NCBI RefSeq assembly: GCF_963676685.1
Contig: NC_092349.1
Coordinates: 87,482,001-87,546,000 of the forward strand
Direction of reading: 5' to 3'
Length of the DNA stretch: 64,000 nucleotides
DNA from: Mytilus edulis
Taxonomy: Eukaryota
A program made the translations under genes and the position numbers. Below the pieces are notes generated by a model. The model had not been told where the DNA came from, searched no databases, and saw only the letters and a program-made list of their open reading frames with translations. This document shows positions 12,017 through 61,304 of this stretch, piece by piece. Positions within the stretch are counted from its first letter, which is position 1, and each line of letters begins with the position of its first letter.

Positions 12017-13072
12017 GAAGAATGGCCAACGAAGATACAAGTATTTTGTCTTAGGGAGGGATTAATCATACTTTGTAAAGGATTACTCTGATTCAAACAA
12101 AAAAATCTCTGAAACTGATATTATCAAGATGCTTGATTTCTTGATTGACAACATATTTGTTACGTTCGGACGACGTGTTTTTCAACAAACTGTCGGCATT
12201 CCAATTGGAACAAATTGTGCCCCTCTACTTGCCGACTTGTTTTTTTTATTATTATGAGGCTGATTTCAATCAGGAACTTCTTAGGAAGAAAGACAAGAAG
12301 TTAGCAATATCCTTTAACTCTACTTTCCGCTATATAGAGGATGTTCTTTCACTAAATAATGCAAACTTTGGTGACTATGTGGAATGCATCTATCACATCG
12401 AACTAGAGATAAAGGATACTACAGATACAGTTAAGTCGGCCTCATATCTTGACTTACATCTAGAAATTGACAATGAAGGTCGGCTGAAAACAACTTTACG
12501 ACAAAAGAGATGATTTCAGCTTTCCAATTGTGAACTTTCCATTTCTAAGTAGCAACATTCCAGTAGCAGCTGCATACGTGGTATATATCTCCCAATTGAT
12601 ACGATATTCCCGTGCTTGCATTTCCTATCATGATTTTCTTGATAGAGGGTTGCTGCTCACAAGGACACTATTAAACCAAGAGTTCCAAATGGTGAAGTTG
12701 AAATCATCCCTTCGTTAATTTTACGGACGCCGTCACGAGTTGGTTGACCGTTATTGAATAACCGTTTCACAAATGATATCGAACATGTTCCTTAAGTCGT
12801 AACTACAATCCCCTTACCTTTCATGAATGTGACCTACCGAATTAGACTATTTACCGGATTTGTTATTACATACATCTGCTTACCCTTCCGGAGCACCTGA
12901 AATCGCCCCTAGTTTTTGGTGGGGTTCGTGTTGTTTATTCTTTAGTTTTCTATGTTGCGTCATGTGTACTATTGTTTGTCTGTTTGTCTTTTTCATTTTT
13001 AGCTATGGCGTTGTCAGTTTATTTTAGATTTATGAGTTTGACTGTCCCTTTGGTATCTTTCGTCCCTCTTTT
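12017..13072 (+). mobile_element. 5'-truncated Penelope-like retroelement, decayed reverse transcriptase plus 3' UTR
   Basis: Frameshifted GIPIGTNCAPLLADLF, FRYIEDVLSL (YIDD mutated), SASYLDLHL, YDKRDDFSFPIVNFPFLSSNIP and YISQLIRYSRAC motifs. Absent at the paralogous site (~35846). Confidence 0.85.
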
Positions 13073-20599: not shown

Positions 20600-21311
20600 T
20601 GATTGATCGATTTTCGGTGTTTAACGCCACTATAGGCTATACAGTAATGGCCAATTTATTTTGGTGGAGGATGCCGGAGTGACAGAAGAGAACCAGACTT
20701 TTTGCAGGAAAATTGGCAACTCTACTAGTCAATTAGGATTGGAATCGAACGCACCTGTCAGTATATGCGTGTTCTCAGAGTTGTACTTGGTACCTTTTTT
20801 GTTGTAAGGATGTATAAGTACCCTGCCACATCCGGTCTGTGTTGTTGTTAAATGTCTGTCTGCTTTGTATCGATCTGATGAGTTGCACCCTTTTCCACTG
20901 ACTTTAATAGTTTGTTCTTATGTTGTACTGATACACCACTGTCTAGGTTACTTTGAGGGTTCGGCGCCCGCAAACTACTTTAACCCCACCATATTCTGTA
21001 TGTGCCTGTCCCAAGTCGGGAGCCTATAATTCAGTGGTTGTCGTTTGTTGATGTGTATCATATTAGTTTTTCGTTATTATTTGCTTTACAAATCAGGCAT
21101 TAGTTTTCTCGTATGAATTGTTTTACATTTGTCGTTTCGGGGCCGATAATAGTTGACAATGCGGTATGGGTTTTGCTCATTGTTGAAGGCCGTTCGGTGA
21201 CCTATAGTTGTAATTTTCTATCTCATTTGGTCTCTTGTGGAGAGTTGTCTCATTGGTAATAATACCACATCTTTTTATTTTTATACTAAGACCACTCGGT
21301 CAACGAGATCC
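20600..21311 (-). mobile_element. tRNA-derived SINE remnant interrupted by the twister-family insertion
   Basis: A-box-like GGATCTCGTTGACCGAGTGGTCTTA at 21311-21287; the body continues at 20755-20600. Confidence 0.5.
20756..21285 (+). mobile_element. Near full-length, diverged copy of the twister-bearing repeat
   Basis: Colinear with 59325-59836; twister-like domain at 20935-21038. Confidence 0.85.
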
Positions 21312-34307: not shown

Positions 34308-34638
34308 TATAAAAATGAGATGTGGTATAATTGCCAATGAGAAAATTCTTCACAAGACACCAAATAACACCGTACGGCCTTCAACAATGAGCAAAGCAAA
34401 TACCGCATAGTCAGCTATAGAAGGCCCCGAAATGACAAATGTAAAACAATTCAAACGTGAAAACTATTTGGCCCAATCTATGTACAAAATAATGAACGAA
34501 TAACAAATATGTAACACAGTAACAATTGACAACCACTGAATTACAGGCTCCTGACTTGGGACAGGCACGTACATACAGAATGTGGCGAGGTTAAACATGT
34601 TGGTGGACGCCCAATCATCCCTCTAACCTGGGACAGTG
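34308..34638 (-). mobile_element. 5'-truncated copy of the twister-bearing repeat
   Basis: Reverse complement of 59486-59836; twister-like domain at 34532-34638; absent at the paralogous site (~10810). Confidence 0.85.
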
Positions 34639-45862: not shown

Positions 45863-48800
45863 TTTTTAGCAATAATCATGCTAATAAAAACCTCACAACA
45901 ATTTCTGAATTTACAGTAGTCTGGTATATAAAAAGACCCTAAATGAAAACGAAAAATATGTAAAACAATTCAAACTGAATTACAGGCTTCTGACATGGGA
46001 CAGGCACATACTAATTGAAGGATGTGATGGCCATTATGGGGCTATTGGGGGCTAGACTATATAGCTAGCAGTTTGTGGTGCCAAACCCACTTAACCTGGT
46101 ACATGTATATTGATGTGAAAAGGGCTTCACTCACAAGATCTATATACAGTATACAAAAAAGAAATGCATCTAACAAAAACTCACACAAGACATGTTTTTT
46201 GACAGTAAATTTATTCACACATTGACATTGGCAAGATACATGTACATTGAAAGGTTGTTCTGTTTGTTAAATGCCTGAAGTACAAATTATAACACAAATG
46301 ACAACAGGCCCGAGAACACAGTTCTTTCGTAGTGCATTAAATTCAAATTAAAAAAATCGCACCTGCTCTTTCTCAGAAAGATTTTTACAGTGTAGTGTAC
46401 TACCAGTGAGACAAATAATATCAAAATTATAGAAACTTCTACCAGCTCTAATGTTCACGAGTTTAGTCTTTCCTATATCAAAATGGTGTATTTTAACATG
46501 TTGGCCTATTAACTTAAAACAGCAAAACAAAATCTAATAAACATCTGACAGTAATTAATGCCTAGAATGATTTTTTTAACTGTATACAGTAGAATAGATA
46601 AATTAAAACCAGAAAGTTCATACTGTACATATATTTATTAGCTAAGCTGTTGATCTTCTTTCTGTTGTTTGCTTACATGTTCTTTGCATTCACTCAAAAG
46701 TAAAAGTACATATAGTTCTGTAAAGGTATAAAATAGTGAGCATCAGTTCAATATGTTCATACTAATTACTACATCTAGTTTTTGTGTGGACTTCATGGAC
46801 TTCTTGATTAAATAATTTAGATTTTATTCAATTTTAGCTTGTTACCAAAAGAATGGAAAGTACAGTATTAAAACCACTGGTGAACATGTACTGTACATGT
46901 AGGTGTGAATGTCCTGCAAAAAGAACTGATATCAAAGTATGTTCATCTCCAGAATTGCAGTAAATATAAATAATTTGATGCACTCTGTTCTCAAGTATAA
47001 TTGTACATGTACACTTGCTTATTTTTCTCTCTTTCCAATGTCAAGTCGGGGGTTAAGAAATTTTGTTATAGCTCACTAGACCAGGGCTAATTGGTAGCAG
47101 GATTTTACTAGCCCTGTTGGAAGAGCTGCTAGCCCAACAAAACTGACCTGCTGGCCCGAGTATGACTTACAAATTCAAAGTTTGCTGCAAAATACAATGA
47201 ATTCTATAAACTTTACAATTTTTATCCGTTGTACAGTAATTTTTAGCTAATTGGATAATCAAAACTATGTCAGCAAAAAAATATCCCATTAGCAGATATA
47301 TTCAATTGCTTTGATACATGTGATAATTGAATATTCCTTGACTATTCTGTAATAATGAGTTGACCAAATCCCGATATGGTACAACTCTTGACCACTGCTA
47401 TAGTATATTGGTATATAAAAGGATTGGGGTGATTTTTATCAAATACATCATTACGTTTGTGTATTAAAAAGAATTATGAAATGCTCATATTTGTTTTCAG
47501 TTTTAAAAATTCTCTTTATTAAAATAAATCAAATGACCTCAAATATTTATGTGAATAAATATCACCATCCATAGTTTGTGTCTTTTATAATTGTTTTATA
47601 AAGGAAGTACAGTAATATTTATATATAAAACGTATACATTTATCACAGGTAAGCTAATTGTGGGCTATAAATTGACTACAAACTGGGCATGAGTCTCTAA
47701 ACTGAAATAGTATTTGTTAGAAATTTTATTTCTTTAAAATCGAATTCAATTGAATATCAATGAAGATAATCGCTAAGATAGAACATGTAGAATGGTGATG
47801 AGGGGATTTTCCACTTTCTATTTTGAAAACGCCAAGAATTTTTTGTTTCTAGTCCGTCGGGCATATTAAGTTACAAGTTTTGGTTGCTCGAGGCCCAAAC
47901 GCTGTAGTAAAGAGTCAAAAATTAGTTTTATGGTTCAATAAATTCAAAATAAATAATAGCCGTTCATTAAAATGACATTTTATATTTAAATATTTTATGA
48001 TGTATTTAAATGAGTAGTTATTGTTGCAAACTCCATTAGAATTTTGAATTGAGATCATTTTTGGAATAAGAGAAAGGGGGACGTGGAAAAAAAATAGGGG
48101 TGGGGGTCATTTTAGATTTCAGAATTTAAAAAGAAAATTTCTTCAAATATTTTTTCTTTGAGAGGATTAATATTCAACAGCAAAGTAAATTGCTCAAAAG
48201 CAAAAAAAAAAAAATTAAGTTCATTAGACCACATTTATTCTGTGTCAGAAACCTATGATGTGTCAACTGTTTAATCACAATCCAAATTCAGAGCTGTATT
48301 CAGCTTGAATGTTGTGTCCATACTTGCCTCAACCTTCAGGGTTCGACCTCTGCAGTCGTATAAAGCTGCACCCTGTGGAGTATCTGGTTAAATTGGTCGC
48401 CATTTAGGTCCAAATGCCATACATATTATATACACAGGTAATGTGTAGTACACATGCATGAATAGAGTTAGTTTTCATTATTTAAAAAAAGAGGAAAATA
48501 TGTAGTATCATTGCCAATGAGACAACTATTCATCAGGTCAAAATGACTGAATGTTAGCAACTAAAGATACAAAAATAAACAGAGTTTTTCATTCATTTAA
48601 TTAAAAGCATTCACATAAGTATATTTTTTTACATTTTCTATTTTACATTATAGGTAATGAGATGTAGTAAAGAAGAAACAATGAGATGGAGTTAAGGAAT
48701 GAATTATAAAGAATGAACATGATGAAAGAAGGAACATAGCCAAAAAGATACTGAAATAAAAATAAATAAATACATTTGTTAATACATAAATTTGTATGTT

Positions 48801-50639: not shown

Positions 50640-50880
50640 ATAGTGTTTATTTGATTTTGTTGAATTTGGAGGTAGAACTCATCAACAAATTGTCGGCATT
50701 CATTTGAGATCGAACTGTGCATCTCTCCTAGACGACCTTTTCTTATTTTGATATGAGTCGGAGTTTCTGCAGAAACATGTCAGAAACAAGAACATTAAAA
50801 AAGCCAGATCATAAATTTCTCATAATGCACTAATGATGATTTTCTTTTCAATAACAATCAAAATTGATTGGGTTCCATTT
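50640..50880 (+). mobile_element. Highly decayed Penelope-like RT fragment (second subfamily)
   Basis: EFGGRTHQQIVGIHLRSNCASLLDDLFLF*YESEFLQ resembles the GIP.GTNCAPLLADLFL..YE motif. Confidence 0.7.
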
Positions 50881-57819: not shown

Positions 57820-59299
57820 TTAACAGTTCAAGTCAGTATTCTAATGTAACATGTACGTGTAAATAAGTAAATCGTTTCGAGGTAAATATGACACAACTAA
57901 TAAAATTGAAAATGGAAATGAGGAATGTTTAATGTTCCATTTATTGGCGCAATTCATATTATAAAAAAAGAAAGAAGAGATGGGCACGATTCAAACCTTT
58001 ACAATTTGACAAATTACAACTGACCGTTTTGACAAACCAGTAAATTCTTCGTCCGGGGATATGCAGCTGACATTAATCTTCCTTCGGTAACTTTACAATA
58101 CCCAGCCGTGTCATTTCCGTATATTGTACATGTAGATAGCTCGTGTGATACATGTATATACACCAGAAATACCCATCATTCAAGTGATTTTTATTTTTAG
58201 AAGAACTCCATATCGGGTAACATTAAATATACATACACATAAAATTACAGTTGAAAAAAAAAATGTTAATAATAAGTTCAAATGTTGTTTTTATTAAATG
58301 CACCTAGGTACGTATTTGTAAACTTATGTTGTTACTTTATTTCATATAAATTTTATTTTTCTCGTTGTGTTGCTTGTCCATTAATTGACGTTTACGCTAT
58401 ATTTTTTGTTCGGTATTTGTGAAAACCTGCTCATCTATCAATTTCACAAGAAATATAAAACAGTCGTAAGTCATGAACACTGAAGTTTAACTTGTTATCA
58501 ATTTTTTGTATACGCAAAAAGATAAAATTAAATGAAACACTTTAAAGCTGTTTAAATCATGCAGTGAGTTTTGAAAATATAGTTTTGAAAAACCGTTTAT
58601 TTTTGTTTAATACTTTTTCTGTCCCTTTTCTTAAAAATTATGACACGTGTCACTGGTAAATATAGAACTAGTCCACTATGAATAATCACAAACAACAAAT
58701 TTTTGAATCTTTTATCATAAATTTTGTTCTGTTAAATCAAAGACATGTAGTACATGTATTCTATTATCCGGGATAAATTATTCACAATGATAAAGACATA
58801 AGGGATGATTTAGAAATTAGCATGTTGTGTATACACATACACCTATCTATTGGTGAACACTTATATGTTGCCCACTAGCTGTCCTTATGTGATTTTTATT
58901 GTTTGGTTGCGAGTGTCTCGTTGTCGTTCAACCCACTATGATCTCCTACAGTTTCAATATATATTTTTCATAAGACTTTGCTCAGAGGAAAGTAATAGAA
59001 TAGGTTTGGATATACATTTTAAATCCCCAAAATTTTATTTTAAACTATTAATTTTGAAGACGTGTGTTATCTAAACGAAGTCTATATGGTCACCAAATCA
59101 CCTGTTTATTGTCTGTTTTGGTTTATTATTTTAAGCATAAAGTTTATAAATCCATCTCTGAACACACATTATACATGTATAGCATTAAGTCAAAGTAAAC
59201 ATTAAACTTATGAATGGCGGAAAAGAAATATCTGAAAACGATAGATGGATGTTGGATGTGTACGGATTGATAGTTTAGTCTTAGTTGCATGATTTTTTT

Positions 59300-59836
59300 A
59301 TTAGTTGTTAGTGACTTTGAACTAGCTGTCAGATAACTGCGAGTACTCTCAGATTTGTTCATTGTGTCTTTTTGTGTCGGGATGTATAAGTACCGGGCCG
59401 CGTCCACTTGTACTTTTGTCCATCTGATGAGTTAAGCCTTTTTCATCTGATTTTTATAGTTCGTTCTTATGTTGTACTGTTATACCACTGTCCCAGGTTA
59501 GGTGGAGGGTGGGGATCCCCTTAACATGTTTAACCCCGCCACATAATTTATGTATGTGCCTGTCCCAAGTCAGGAGCCTGTAATTCAGTGGTTGTCATTT
59601 GTTTATGTGTTACATATTTGTTTTTCGTTAATTTTTTACATAAATAAGGCCGTTAGTTTTCTCGTTTGAATTGTTTTACATTGTCTTATCGGGGCCTTTT
59701 ATAGCTCACTATGCGGTATGGGCTTTGCTCATTGTTGAAGGCCGTACGGTGACCTATAGTTGTTAATGTCTGTGTCATTTTGGTCTTTTGTGGATAGTTG
59801 TCTCATTGGCAATCATACCACATCTTCTTTTTTATA
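59300..59836 (+). mobile_element. Longest copy of an abundant non-coding retroposon-like repeat carrying a twister ribozyme fold
   Basis: At least five copies in the window share the 3' end CACATCTTCTTTTTTATA and differ in 5' truncation. Confidence 0.85.
59484..59592 (+). ncRNA. Candidate P5-type (circularly permuted) twister ribozyme
   Basis: P5 CAGGU/GCCUG extended by ACCACUG/CAGUGGU; P2' GGUG-GA-GGG; U^AA-CCCC-GC; P3 CACAUA/UAUGUG; P4 CCUG-UCCCAAGU-CAGG-A. Confidence 0.78.
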
Positions 59837-61304
59837 CTATCAGTACACTATTCTATCAACATGTGTTTGGTGTCCATTTTACAATATATTGTTTAAAAAT
59901 TTAGTGTTTTCTTATTCATTCTGACATCTGTGTCCATGGCTGTTAACAAGAAATTGCGAAGACGTTATGCTTATCTGTTCACCTTTAAAAAGGATTTTTC
60001 AACAGAATATTATATCTATAAAATTAATTGTTTAATTTTTGTTTTTCTCTGCGAAAACAAAATGGCCCTCAAGCTAAATGTCATCGTCATCGGCATGTAT
60101 AATAGAAGACGATAAACACTTTAGAATATACACCACCTGCTGGATCTTTTTACTTGTGCACATATCTCGTTACGTAACAAGTATGAATGTAAAATTCTCG
60201 ATATGGTACATGTATATTCAGCCGAATATACACGGTATCTCTGGACTGGGGTATTTAAGATATTTTGATCTGATAATGAAACATGTAAATATATTTGTGC
60301 TTTATGTAAAAAAAATGCATTTAACCATTTTATTTTTAAAACTTCTTTAAAATAAGTTGACTTTGAGCAAATATTAGGTGAATATTAGATTAAATTTGGG
60401 AAGTCGTGTATATCCCATTTGTTAGGTGAGAAATAAAAAAAATATCAGCTGGGTTTAAGAGTTGCAAATCTTAACAAATTAAATTTATTTTGTATTTGTG
60501 TACCTCAATAGTGTTTGCTAAATATATGTTTTCTCGAATGCCGAAAAGTGAAGAGTTTTTAATACGTGTAAATCACGAATTCACACAAACGACGTTTATA
60601 AATGGTCTGTTCAAAAGTTTAGCTACACTTTTCAAAATATTTCAGACACGTAAATAATATAGGTTATTAGTGCTAGCTTCACAAAGAAAATATCCACTGA
60701 CATGCATAATATCTAATGTCATGGGCCACGGATGGACTGTCTTTATTATAGGGATGCCCATGTGGCACATCAAAGATAAGATTGATTTAACCATTGTACT
60801 TTAGAATTGCAACAAATCTTAAATTCTGAAAATCACTTGAATACATTAACCTGTTATCTTGTCGACTTTACAGCTTATTTCCTAATGCTTGTAGAGTAAA
60901 ATTTTGGTAGGCTTGCTTGCTCTGTTGGTATAAACACGAATTCAAGCTTTGTAAATAACATTGACATCTTCAAACAATGTAGAGGCACATTTTAATCTGT
61001 ATATATTATATTTAAATTTGATTGGACATTATCCCAATTACAATTGTAAAATATACAAACTAAGCAATCAAGCTAACAAAAGTCTCGCTTTACATGCATT
61101 GGGAAATTAGCTGTAAAACCAACATATAGATAGCCGTTATATCATGAGAAGAGATCACGATGAAATTTGAAAGTTAAACAAATCTTATAGTTTTCACGGG
61201 AACGAATATTTTGTTTAAACGTTGTAGTGATCAGCCCATCAATGACGTAATTTAAAAAATAAGACGACAAGGTCGAAAATAGTTATAGACGTCTTATAGC
61301 AAAT

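Follow-up and report, generated by a model that had tools for sequence, protein, structure and literature searches.

A candidate type-P5 twister module without P1 in the 3′-UTR of Naiad-type retroelements of Mytilus edulis

We have analysed a stretch of 64,000 nucleotides of the Mytilus edulis genome (contig NC_092349.1, positions 87,482,001 to 87,546,000 of the forward strand), here called the window, in which an initial annotation made from the letters had placed a circularly permuted twister ribozyme at positions 59484-59592, inside a high-copy repeat. Our results show that the twister core nucleotides, together with the helices P5, P2, P3 and P4 and the pseudoknots T1 and T2, persist in several repeat families whose helix sequences differ. 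The module that carries them resides in the 3′ untranslated region (3′-UTR) of Penelope-like retroelements of the Naiad type and is the best-conserved portion of this region. We regard it as very probable that the module has a twister-class fold and that its host is a Naiad. Self-cleavage of intact copies is somewhat favoured, and a dependence of the cut on dimers is a tentative proposal. Taken as a whole, the statement that a P5-type twister-class module is present in Naiad 3′-UTRs, that its intact copies would cleave themselves and that its palindromes would pair them into dimers is, judging from the sequences, a likely one.

A twister core and its helices in four repeat families

When the letters of 59484-59592 were read directly, each of the elements listed by the initial annotation was found in its place (Table 1). 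The twister core nucleotides are all present, namely the G-A followed by GGG (59505-59509), UAA (59531-59533), GC (59538-59539) and UCCCAAG (59563-59569), and the P4 loop UCCCAAGU (59563-59570) supplies the partners of both T1 and T2. In the alignment produced by cmscan, 59531-59539 falls on the UAA-P2-GC section of the twister consensus, and a pseudoknot-free minimum free energy (MFE) fold yielded P5, P3, P4 and part of P2. The single P2 mismatch that had been ascribed to this copy is real (U59503 opposite C59535). The family majority for P2 is GGGG/CCCC, and about two thirds of the RNA reads of the family carry G at 59503; altogether, the read majority differs from the window copy at four positions (G at 59503, U at 59511, G at 59520 and C at 59521). 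The window copy is a slightly damaged member of its family and, with its central P2 mismatch, probably weak or inactive.

Four repeat families have only the module in common, and we compared it across them by aligning 15 copies, 14 of them distinct, with MAFFT; no copy was removed, decayed ones included. The named structure was paired in 84.2% of the cells, compared with 31-46% when the partners were slid by 1-3 columns, and double changes affected 15 pairs against 4.3 ± 1.5 in shuffles, 15 being reached in 0 of 500 shuffles; these values come from a small sample, and the structure under test was derived from the same sequences. Among the individual helices, P3 showed double changes in all five counted pairs and was paired in 93.5% of its cells, P2 showed them in three of four pairs, and P4 was paired in 96.4% of cells. 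Of the pseudoknots, T1 was paired in 89.5% of cells; one of its pairs covaries, G-C being replaced by U-A in Family 4, and Family 3 shows a G-U. T2 was paired in 96.3%, as G-U plus C-G. As the initial annotation had claimed, two other copies in the window also covary with the one under study, that at 34539-34637 in P2 and that at 20941-21031 in P5 and T2 (Table 1).

No two families have the same P5 helix, and in every one of them the duplex was far more stable than its shuffles. In Family 1, CAGGU/GCCUG plus ACCACUG/CAGUGGU reached -17.8 kcal/mol versus -7.3 +/- 2.6 kcal/mol for the shuffles; in Family 2, GGCUAGAGGU/GCCUCUGGCC reached about -20 to -23 versus about -8.3 to -9.4 kcal/mol; the corresponding values were -8.6 versus -4.4 kcal/mol for CAGA/UCUG in Family 3 and -13.6 versus -4.8 kcal/mol for AUGGCCAUA/UAUGGUCAU in Family 4. 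P5 beat every shuffle (0/200) in seven of the 12 scored copies. Outside the module conservation drops: Families 1 and 2 are 79% identical within it and 56-57% identical in the rest of the UTR.

The core is also abundant genome-wide. Allowing at most one mismatch, the P4-loop word matched the genome 32,660 times and the reversed control 7 times. An 18-base core descriptor (GAGGG, 15-30 nt, UAA, 4 nt, GC, 8-30 nt, GUCCCAAG) gave 12,985 genome matches and none in the reversed control (1.37 Gb), and adding a GGGG/CCCC P2 left 8,165 matches, again with none in the control. Because Family 2 is young and nearly uniform, such copy counts reflect recent amplification of an intact source and not independent conservation.

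Table 1. Parts of the module at 59484-59592 and other copies of the repeat in the window
Feature	Position	Strand	Description
P5, 5′ strand	59484-59499	+	Outer ACCACUG 59484-59490, internal loop, inner CAGGU 59495-59499
P2 3′ strand, conserved G-A and T1	59501-59504, 59505-59506 and 59507-59509	+	GGUG; G59505-A59506; GGG
Palindrome 1	59511-59520	+	GGGGAUCCCC; occupies the place of the P1 3′ strand
Palindrome 2	59523-59530	+	AACAUGUU; directly 5′ of the predicted cleavage site
Predicted scissile bond, P2 5′ strand and T2	59531/59532, 59534-59537 and 59538-59539	+	U59531/A59532, followed by A59533; CCCC; GC
P3 hairpin	59540-59558	+	CACAUA 59540-59545 with UAUGUG 59553-59558
P4 stem-loop and A59575	59559-59575	+	CCUG 59559-59562 with CAGG 59571-59574; loop UCCCAAGU 59563-59570
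P5, 3′ strand	59576-59592	+	Inner GCCUG 59576-59580, loop, outer CAGUGGU 59586-59592
Family 1 copy, Naiad-type 3′-UTR and tail	59276-59836	+	5′-truncated or non-autonomous derivative
Diverged Family 1 copy	20941-21031	+	P2 broken; P5 UAGGU/GCCUA; T2 A-U; palindromes GGCGCC and AAACUACUUU
Family 1 copy	34539-34637	-	5′-truncated just inside the outer P5 strand; P2 GAGG/CCUC compensatory; T1 broken
Fragment	45942-46011	-	Only P4 and the 3′ P5 strand left

The host element and its copies

The repeat had been described as a short, high-copy element of retroposon-like character. Its high copy number held, but it does not stand alone; it very probably represents the 3′-UTR and tail of a Penelope-like element of the Naiad type. 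The longest form of the repeat measures ~560 nt (59276-59836), has a 5′ edge in common with an independent copy (L039:4889-5456), and can be aligned over its full length with the Family 2 3′-UTR and tail that follow the stop codon of the reverse transcriptase (RT) at the genomic locus L042. At this locus the Family 2 module lies 311 nt 3′ of the stop of the RT open reading frame (ORF), on the same strand, and the layout is the same at two other loci (L034 and L040). Within the element, the module is placed on the sense strand, ~310 nt after the RT stop and ~240 nt before the 3′ end.

The frame at L042 contains the RT motifs GIPMG... and YLDD. The genomic ORF (L042:2-895) covers only the C-terminal part of the RT, ends without an endonuclease and is 57% identical to the C-terminal part of the homologue P0198. 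Both P0198 and a second homologue, P0199, carry a KR-rich block, GPKY and ADKA; P0198 additionally has SCDC (a CxC motif) and, at its N-terminus, the end of a GIY-YIG-like domain. The marks published for Naiads are a C-terminal RT, CxC, GxKF/Y, DKA, a KR-rich block and an N-terminal GIY-YIG (PMC8557442; Craig et al. 2021). Sequence searches of Pfam and PDB left the RT fragment unclassified, with no Pfam domain, an Atlas search of the same fragment gave only a loose RT-associated lead, and a search of viral_contigs for the Naiad RT found nothing.

The edges of the copies were surveyed throughout the window and in a genome sample of twenty 10-kb pieces placed at random. Copies shared one 3′ end and started anywhere (query starts from 1 to 501, ends near 530-539), and a shared 3′ end with scattered starts is the pattern of target-primed reverse transcription. 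That the repeat is a Naiad 3′ end agrees with a published statement on such genomes, according to which the abundant 3′ ends of Naiads are what short repeat models classed as unknown capture (PMC8557442). A tRNA-derived short interspersed nuclear element was considered and rejected, no tRNA head being found in the repeat.

Several further observations concern the element and its surroundings. The Naiad tail copy is nested in a larger composite repeat (window 57940-61120 (L001), edges near 58859/58886). This repeat exceeds 3 kb in length and is present at least 40 times in the genome, at 96-99% identity; in some copies an extra insertion of ~440 bp lies downstream. Naiad-like RT fragments, 30-61% identical to the query ORFs, occur in the window at 12117-12754 (+) and 50656-50769 (+). 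At 59424-59431, the letters CUGAUGAG resemble a hammerhead core and are retained in Family 1 copies; a hammerhead reading was rejected, as Rfam gave no match at E<=10 either to hammerheads or to the selenocysteine insertion sequence (SECIS), and the letters are not preserved in the UTR of Family 2. Three identical modules lie on the minus strand at G000:C1:6233547, 6238296 and 6243046, and their spacing of 4,749 and 4,750 bp suggests a head-to-tail array of what would be full-length units. Same-strand neighbours within 5 kb were mildly above expectation (6 versus ~3 expected, over the first 100 places).

Related modules were also encountered beside other coding fragments and in other collections. 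L042 holds a second, different Naiad-like RT fragment (1881-2420; 47% identical), followed ~1 kb later by a diverged, twister-like module of Family 4 (L042:3452-3545) with CAA for UAA, GAGGU with loop UACCAAGU (T1 U-A) and the palindromes UGGCAUGCCA and AACC-A-GGUU. Most matches in a pattern scan of metagenomes were due to chance; a mussel contig of Family 2, two related JYMV01 contigs and a pair of canonical type-P5 twisters stood apart from these. The contigs labelled as metagenomic that contain related modules are L087:1635-1824(-), L133:2088-2277(-) and L118:60-249(-); L118 (ERZ887851) belongs to Family 2, and the two JYMV01 contigs form a further lineage with palindrome AACCGGUU. The canonical type-P5 twisters (L063:14271-14460(-) and L140:64-141(+)) have P3 and a normal P1 of 7-8 bp.

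Palindromes, cleavage and alternative explanations

The initial annotation had remarked on a missing P1 with a hairpin and a palindrome in its place. This was borne out as a family-wide feature, with a second palindrome in addition: between GGG and UAA there is a 21-nt stretch that contains two palindromes and no P1 hairpin. Palindrome 1 takes the forms GGGAUCCC (GGGGAUCCCC in the window subfamily), UGAGAUCUCA, UGGUACCA, UGGCAUGCCA, GGCGCC and CGAGCGCUCG, and palindrome 2 the forms AACAUGUU, AAACAUGUUU, AAACUAGUUU, AAAACGUUUU and AACCGGUU. In both, the letters and the centres differ by lineage while self-complementarity is retained. Palindrome 1 of the window forms a self-duplex of -21.6 kcal/mol and a hairpin of -2.5 kcal/mol, and palindrome 2 a self-duplex of -6.4 kcal/mol and no hairpin; across the variants, self-duplexes range from -6 to -22 kcal/mol versus 0 to -2.5 kcal/mol for hairpins. 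Because a hairpin would not need self-complementary loop letters, pairing between two copies is the simpler reading, and the retention of the palindromes with changed letters suggests that two molecules may pair. In the related metagenomic copy L133, a true looped hairpin replaces palindrome 1. RNAalifold also gave an alternative in which the T1 GGG (59507-59509) pairs with the 3′ half of palindrome 1, at 59517-59519 (columns 22-24 and 32-34 of alignment A1). Such a pairing would conceal T1 in a monomer and could be a switch.

These features can be combined into a mechanism. The module is a conserved part of the 3′-UTR of Naiad-type elements and of the far commoner 5′-truncated tails, and its intact copies would be cut between the U and the A of UAA (59531/59532 in the window). 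The palindromes would pair two copies of the module, located either on one tandem transcript of the pseudo-long terminal repeat (pLTR) type or on two RNAs, and cutting would hinge on this dimer, as described for hammerheads of other Penelope-like elements; solitary copies in host transcripts would remain mostly uncut. In this complete form, a P1-less type-P5 twister of Naiads that is gated through dimers by two conserved palindromes, cutting tandem transcripts and sparing solitary tails, is a possibility that we hold with considerable doubt. The literature agrees with the remark of the initial annotation that twisters without P1 cleave, with the qualification that the cutting reported for a P1-less twister was inefficient (PMC8501958).

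Traces of cutting were sought in four raw-read runs of ordinary RNA sequencing (RNA-seq) with the same species label, and in the genome copies themselves. RNA-seq reads span 59531/59532 in both orientations, with a depth that increases toward the 3′ end, and the four runs showed no pile of molecule ends at this bond or elsewhere. Since most reads probably derive from solitary copies in host transcripts, this result represents an absence of support and not a refutation. The circular RNAs for which the initial annotation had proposed a check did not appear either: no joint of the 3′ product end to the 5′ product start, as expected of unit-length circles, was present in the four runs, only short 'goes back' joints near the tail. 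A joint that 'goes back 47' (59599 to 59553) occurred in run X21 only, in 49 reads with 27 starts, and probably reflects a copy in which a short segment is duplicated. In the genome, frequent reverse transcription of cleaved 3′ products should leave many copies beginning at the A after the cut. Copies with four unrelated bases before this A numbered 37, compared with 14 at a control junction 6 nt upstream (~117 and ~66, respectively, after correction for pattern stringency), and many of the 37 look like internal deletions; we concluded that copies do not start at the predicted cut in clear excess over the control junction.

Together with these two negative results, several others weigh against a self-cleaving twister. 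A standard P1 is absent, as 59510-59514 and 59526-59530 have no complementarity in the window copy and the same holds in all families. The Rfam scan that had been suggested as a check gave no gathering-level match in the whole window; the sole twister match at the E-value level was to the twister-P1 model, which scored 19.5 bits (cut-off 67.2) with E = 0.17 over 501 bases. The Twister-P5 model (RF02684) found no match in a genome sample (79 of 31,236 candidates scored) and none on the intact copies of L042 and L118, and it scores 50.8 bits on the canonical metagenomic twister L140:64-141, which has a P3 insertion and an 8-bp P1. Its failure on the mussel module is explained by the missing P1 and still counts against membership in the class. 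All copies have a G-U in T2 where G-C is expected, three of the four P2 pairs are formed in the window copy, and RNAalifold, when run de novo, recovered only P3 and P4. The MFE z-score was only -1.09 (-0.12 for the opposite strand), so that the folding energy is not unusual. Finally, the genome-wide counts of P2 patterns (UCCC/..GGA 16, UCCC/..GGG 192, CCCC/..GGA 234 and CCCC/GGGG 8,165) show the U-A/C-G contingency only weakly, with an odds ratio of ~3, and this signal is dominated by neutral decay of young families. Overall, the P5-type reading of the initial annotation stands in its architecture, that is, in the core invariants, both pseudoknots and the compensatory substitutions by which the four families differ in P5, P3, P2 and T1, and it fell short at the Rfam thresholds and at the RNA ends.

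The same negative results are what one would expect if the twister fold, or a descendant of it, had been retained as a structured 3′-UTR element that does not cleave. Such an element might serve as a handle for the RT at the start of target-primed reverse transcription, or in dimerisation or packaging of the RNA, with the palindromes as a dimer linkage site. The lack of a cleavage sign in RNA-seq, the lack of an excess of copies starting at the cut site, the absent P1 and the want of a passing covariance-model match all fit this explanation, and so does the location of the module within the part of the RNA that must stay attached to the 3′ end for retrotransposition. However, the nucleotides important for twister catalysis are present in all families, namely UAA (replaced by CAA in the diverged copy of Family 4), the G-A that precedes T1 and the A-A of the loop. 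A total of 12,985 copies retain them although the helix sequences change, and a pure protein handle would not require an exact twister core. We consider a non-cleaving element unlikely, though it deserves to be taken seriously.

A quite different explanation starts from the only match that cmscan returned. The type-P1 model sets the GUAAU-UCAG-UGG found after P4 against its GUAAA-P2-GAGGG, and twister variants are known at the 5′ ends of RTE elements (PMC8501958; PMC7761336), so that the module could be a decayed type-P1 twister akin to them and the upstream GGUG-GA-GGG a coincidence. The match aligns UAA, CCCC, GC, P3, P4 and the loop well, but its P2 is forced and does not pair. Moreover, Families 2 to 4 do not have the 3′ segment and keep instead the upstream P2 strand, GA and GGG, the module is internal and located in a 3′-UTR, and its copies do not begin at the cut site. 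On the grounds of the unpaired P2 and of the 3′ part that is not conserved in the other families, the type-P1 reading of this weak Rfam match was rejected, and a type-P1 origin appears highly improbable. The likeness to twister could also have arisen by chance in one ancestral repeat and have been spread by retrotransposition; a high copy number is by itself uninformative about function, the MFE z-score is not significant and the Rfam scores are weak. Against such an accident, which we regard as very improbable too, the pairings and the invariants persist in four families whose helices differ, conservation of the module is far above that of its flanks, and the reversed control gave 0 matches in 1.37 Gb.

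Comparison with known systems

If the type-P5 twister reading is correct, the Naiad clade, which was reported to be without hammerheads (PMC8557442) and is described as the only large Penelope-like clade of this kind, would gain a ribozyme that it was thought to lack. In bivalves and numerous other invertebrates, Naiads rank with the most abundant retroelements. Two unrelated ribozyme classes would then have been recruited to the same job in Penelope-like elements, and a second, independent motif would be at hand for testing the long-open question of what ribozymes do in these elements. Tens of thousands of eukaryotic twisters would be added to those known, overlooked by current covariance models because P1 is absent, and the module would explain the conserved core of several high-copy mussel repeats listed as 'unknown'. 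If, in addition, the palindromes act in the way proposed here, this would be the first case of a twister that needs two paired molecules for its activity. Among the papers covered by our literature search, to which Roth et al. 2014 did not belong, none ties twister to Naiads, Penelope-like elements, Mytilus or bivalves.

Type-P5 twister ribozymes (RF02684, clan CL00120) are reportedly those described by Roth et al. in 2014. The mussel module resembles them in the order of its elements (P5, P2, GA, GGG, UAA, P2, GC, an optional P3, P4 and P5), in the UCCCAAG of the P4 loop, in the T1 and T2 partners and in the cut expected at U-A. It differs in having a 21-nt stretch with two palindromes instead of a P1 hairpin, in a T2 made of G-U and C-G and not of two G-C pairs, in being undetected by the Rfam model, and in its host, an animal retroelement with tens of thousands of copies.

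Among retrotransposons, the T-variants of the Perere-3 RTE element of Schistosoma mansoni (PMC8501958) likewise have a twister core in the RNA of the element, a P1 that is weak or not encoded by the element, and a high copy number. These variants are of type P1, lie at the extreme 5′ end and have target-site duplications beside the cut, whereas the mussel module is of type P5, internal to a 3′-UTR and hosted by a Penelope-like element, and its copies show no excess starting at the cut. With respect to the Naiad clade as described (PMC8557442), our elements agree in the C-terminal RT, in the KR-rich, GxKY and DKA marks of the homologues and the CxC of P0198, and in a massive truncation of the 5′ side, short 3′ ends being abundant in genomes of the Mytilus type. 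Unlike what we propose here, that paper describes no Naiad ribozyme, and the word 'twister' is absent from it.

A parallel to the proposed use of the palindromes is provided by the dimer-dependent hammerheads of Penelope-like pLTRs and of metazoan retrozymes (PMC6765202; PMC7229834). Hammerheads of Penelope-like elements have palindromic stem III loops and are cut as dimers (PMC6765202). The mussel module differs from them in its ribozyme class, in the dimer action, which is here a proposal drawn from the palindromes, and in yielding no circular-RNA joints; it shares with them the host superfamily and the replacement of a helix by a palindrome through which two copies could pair.

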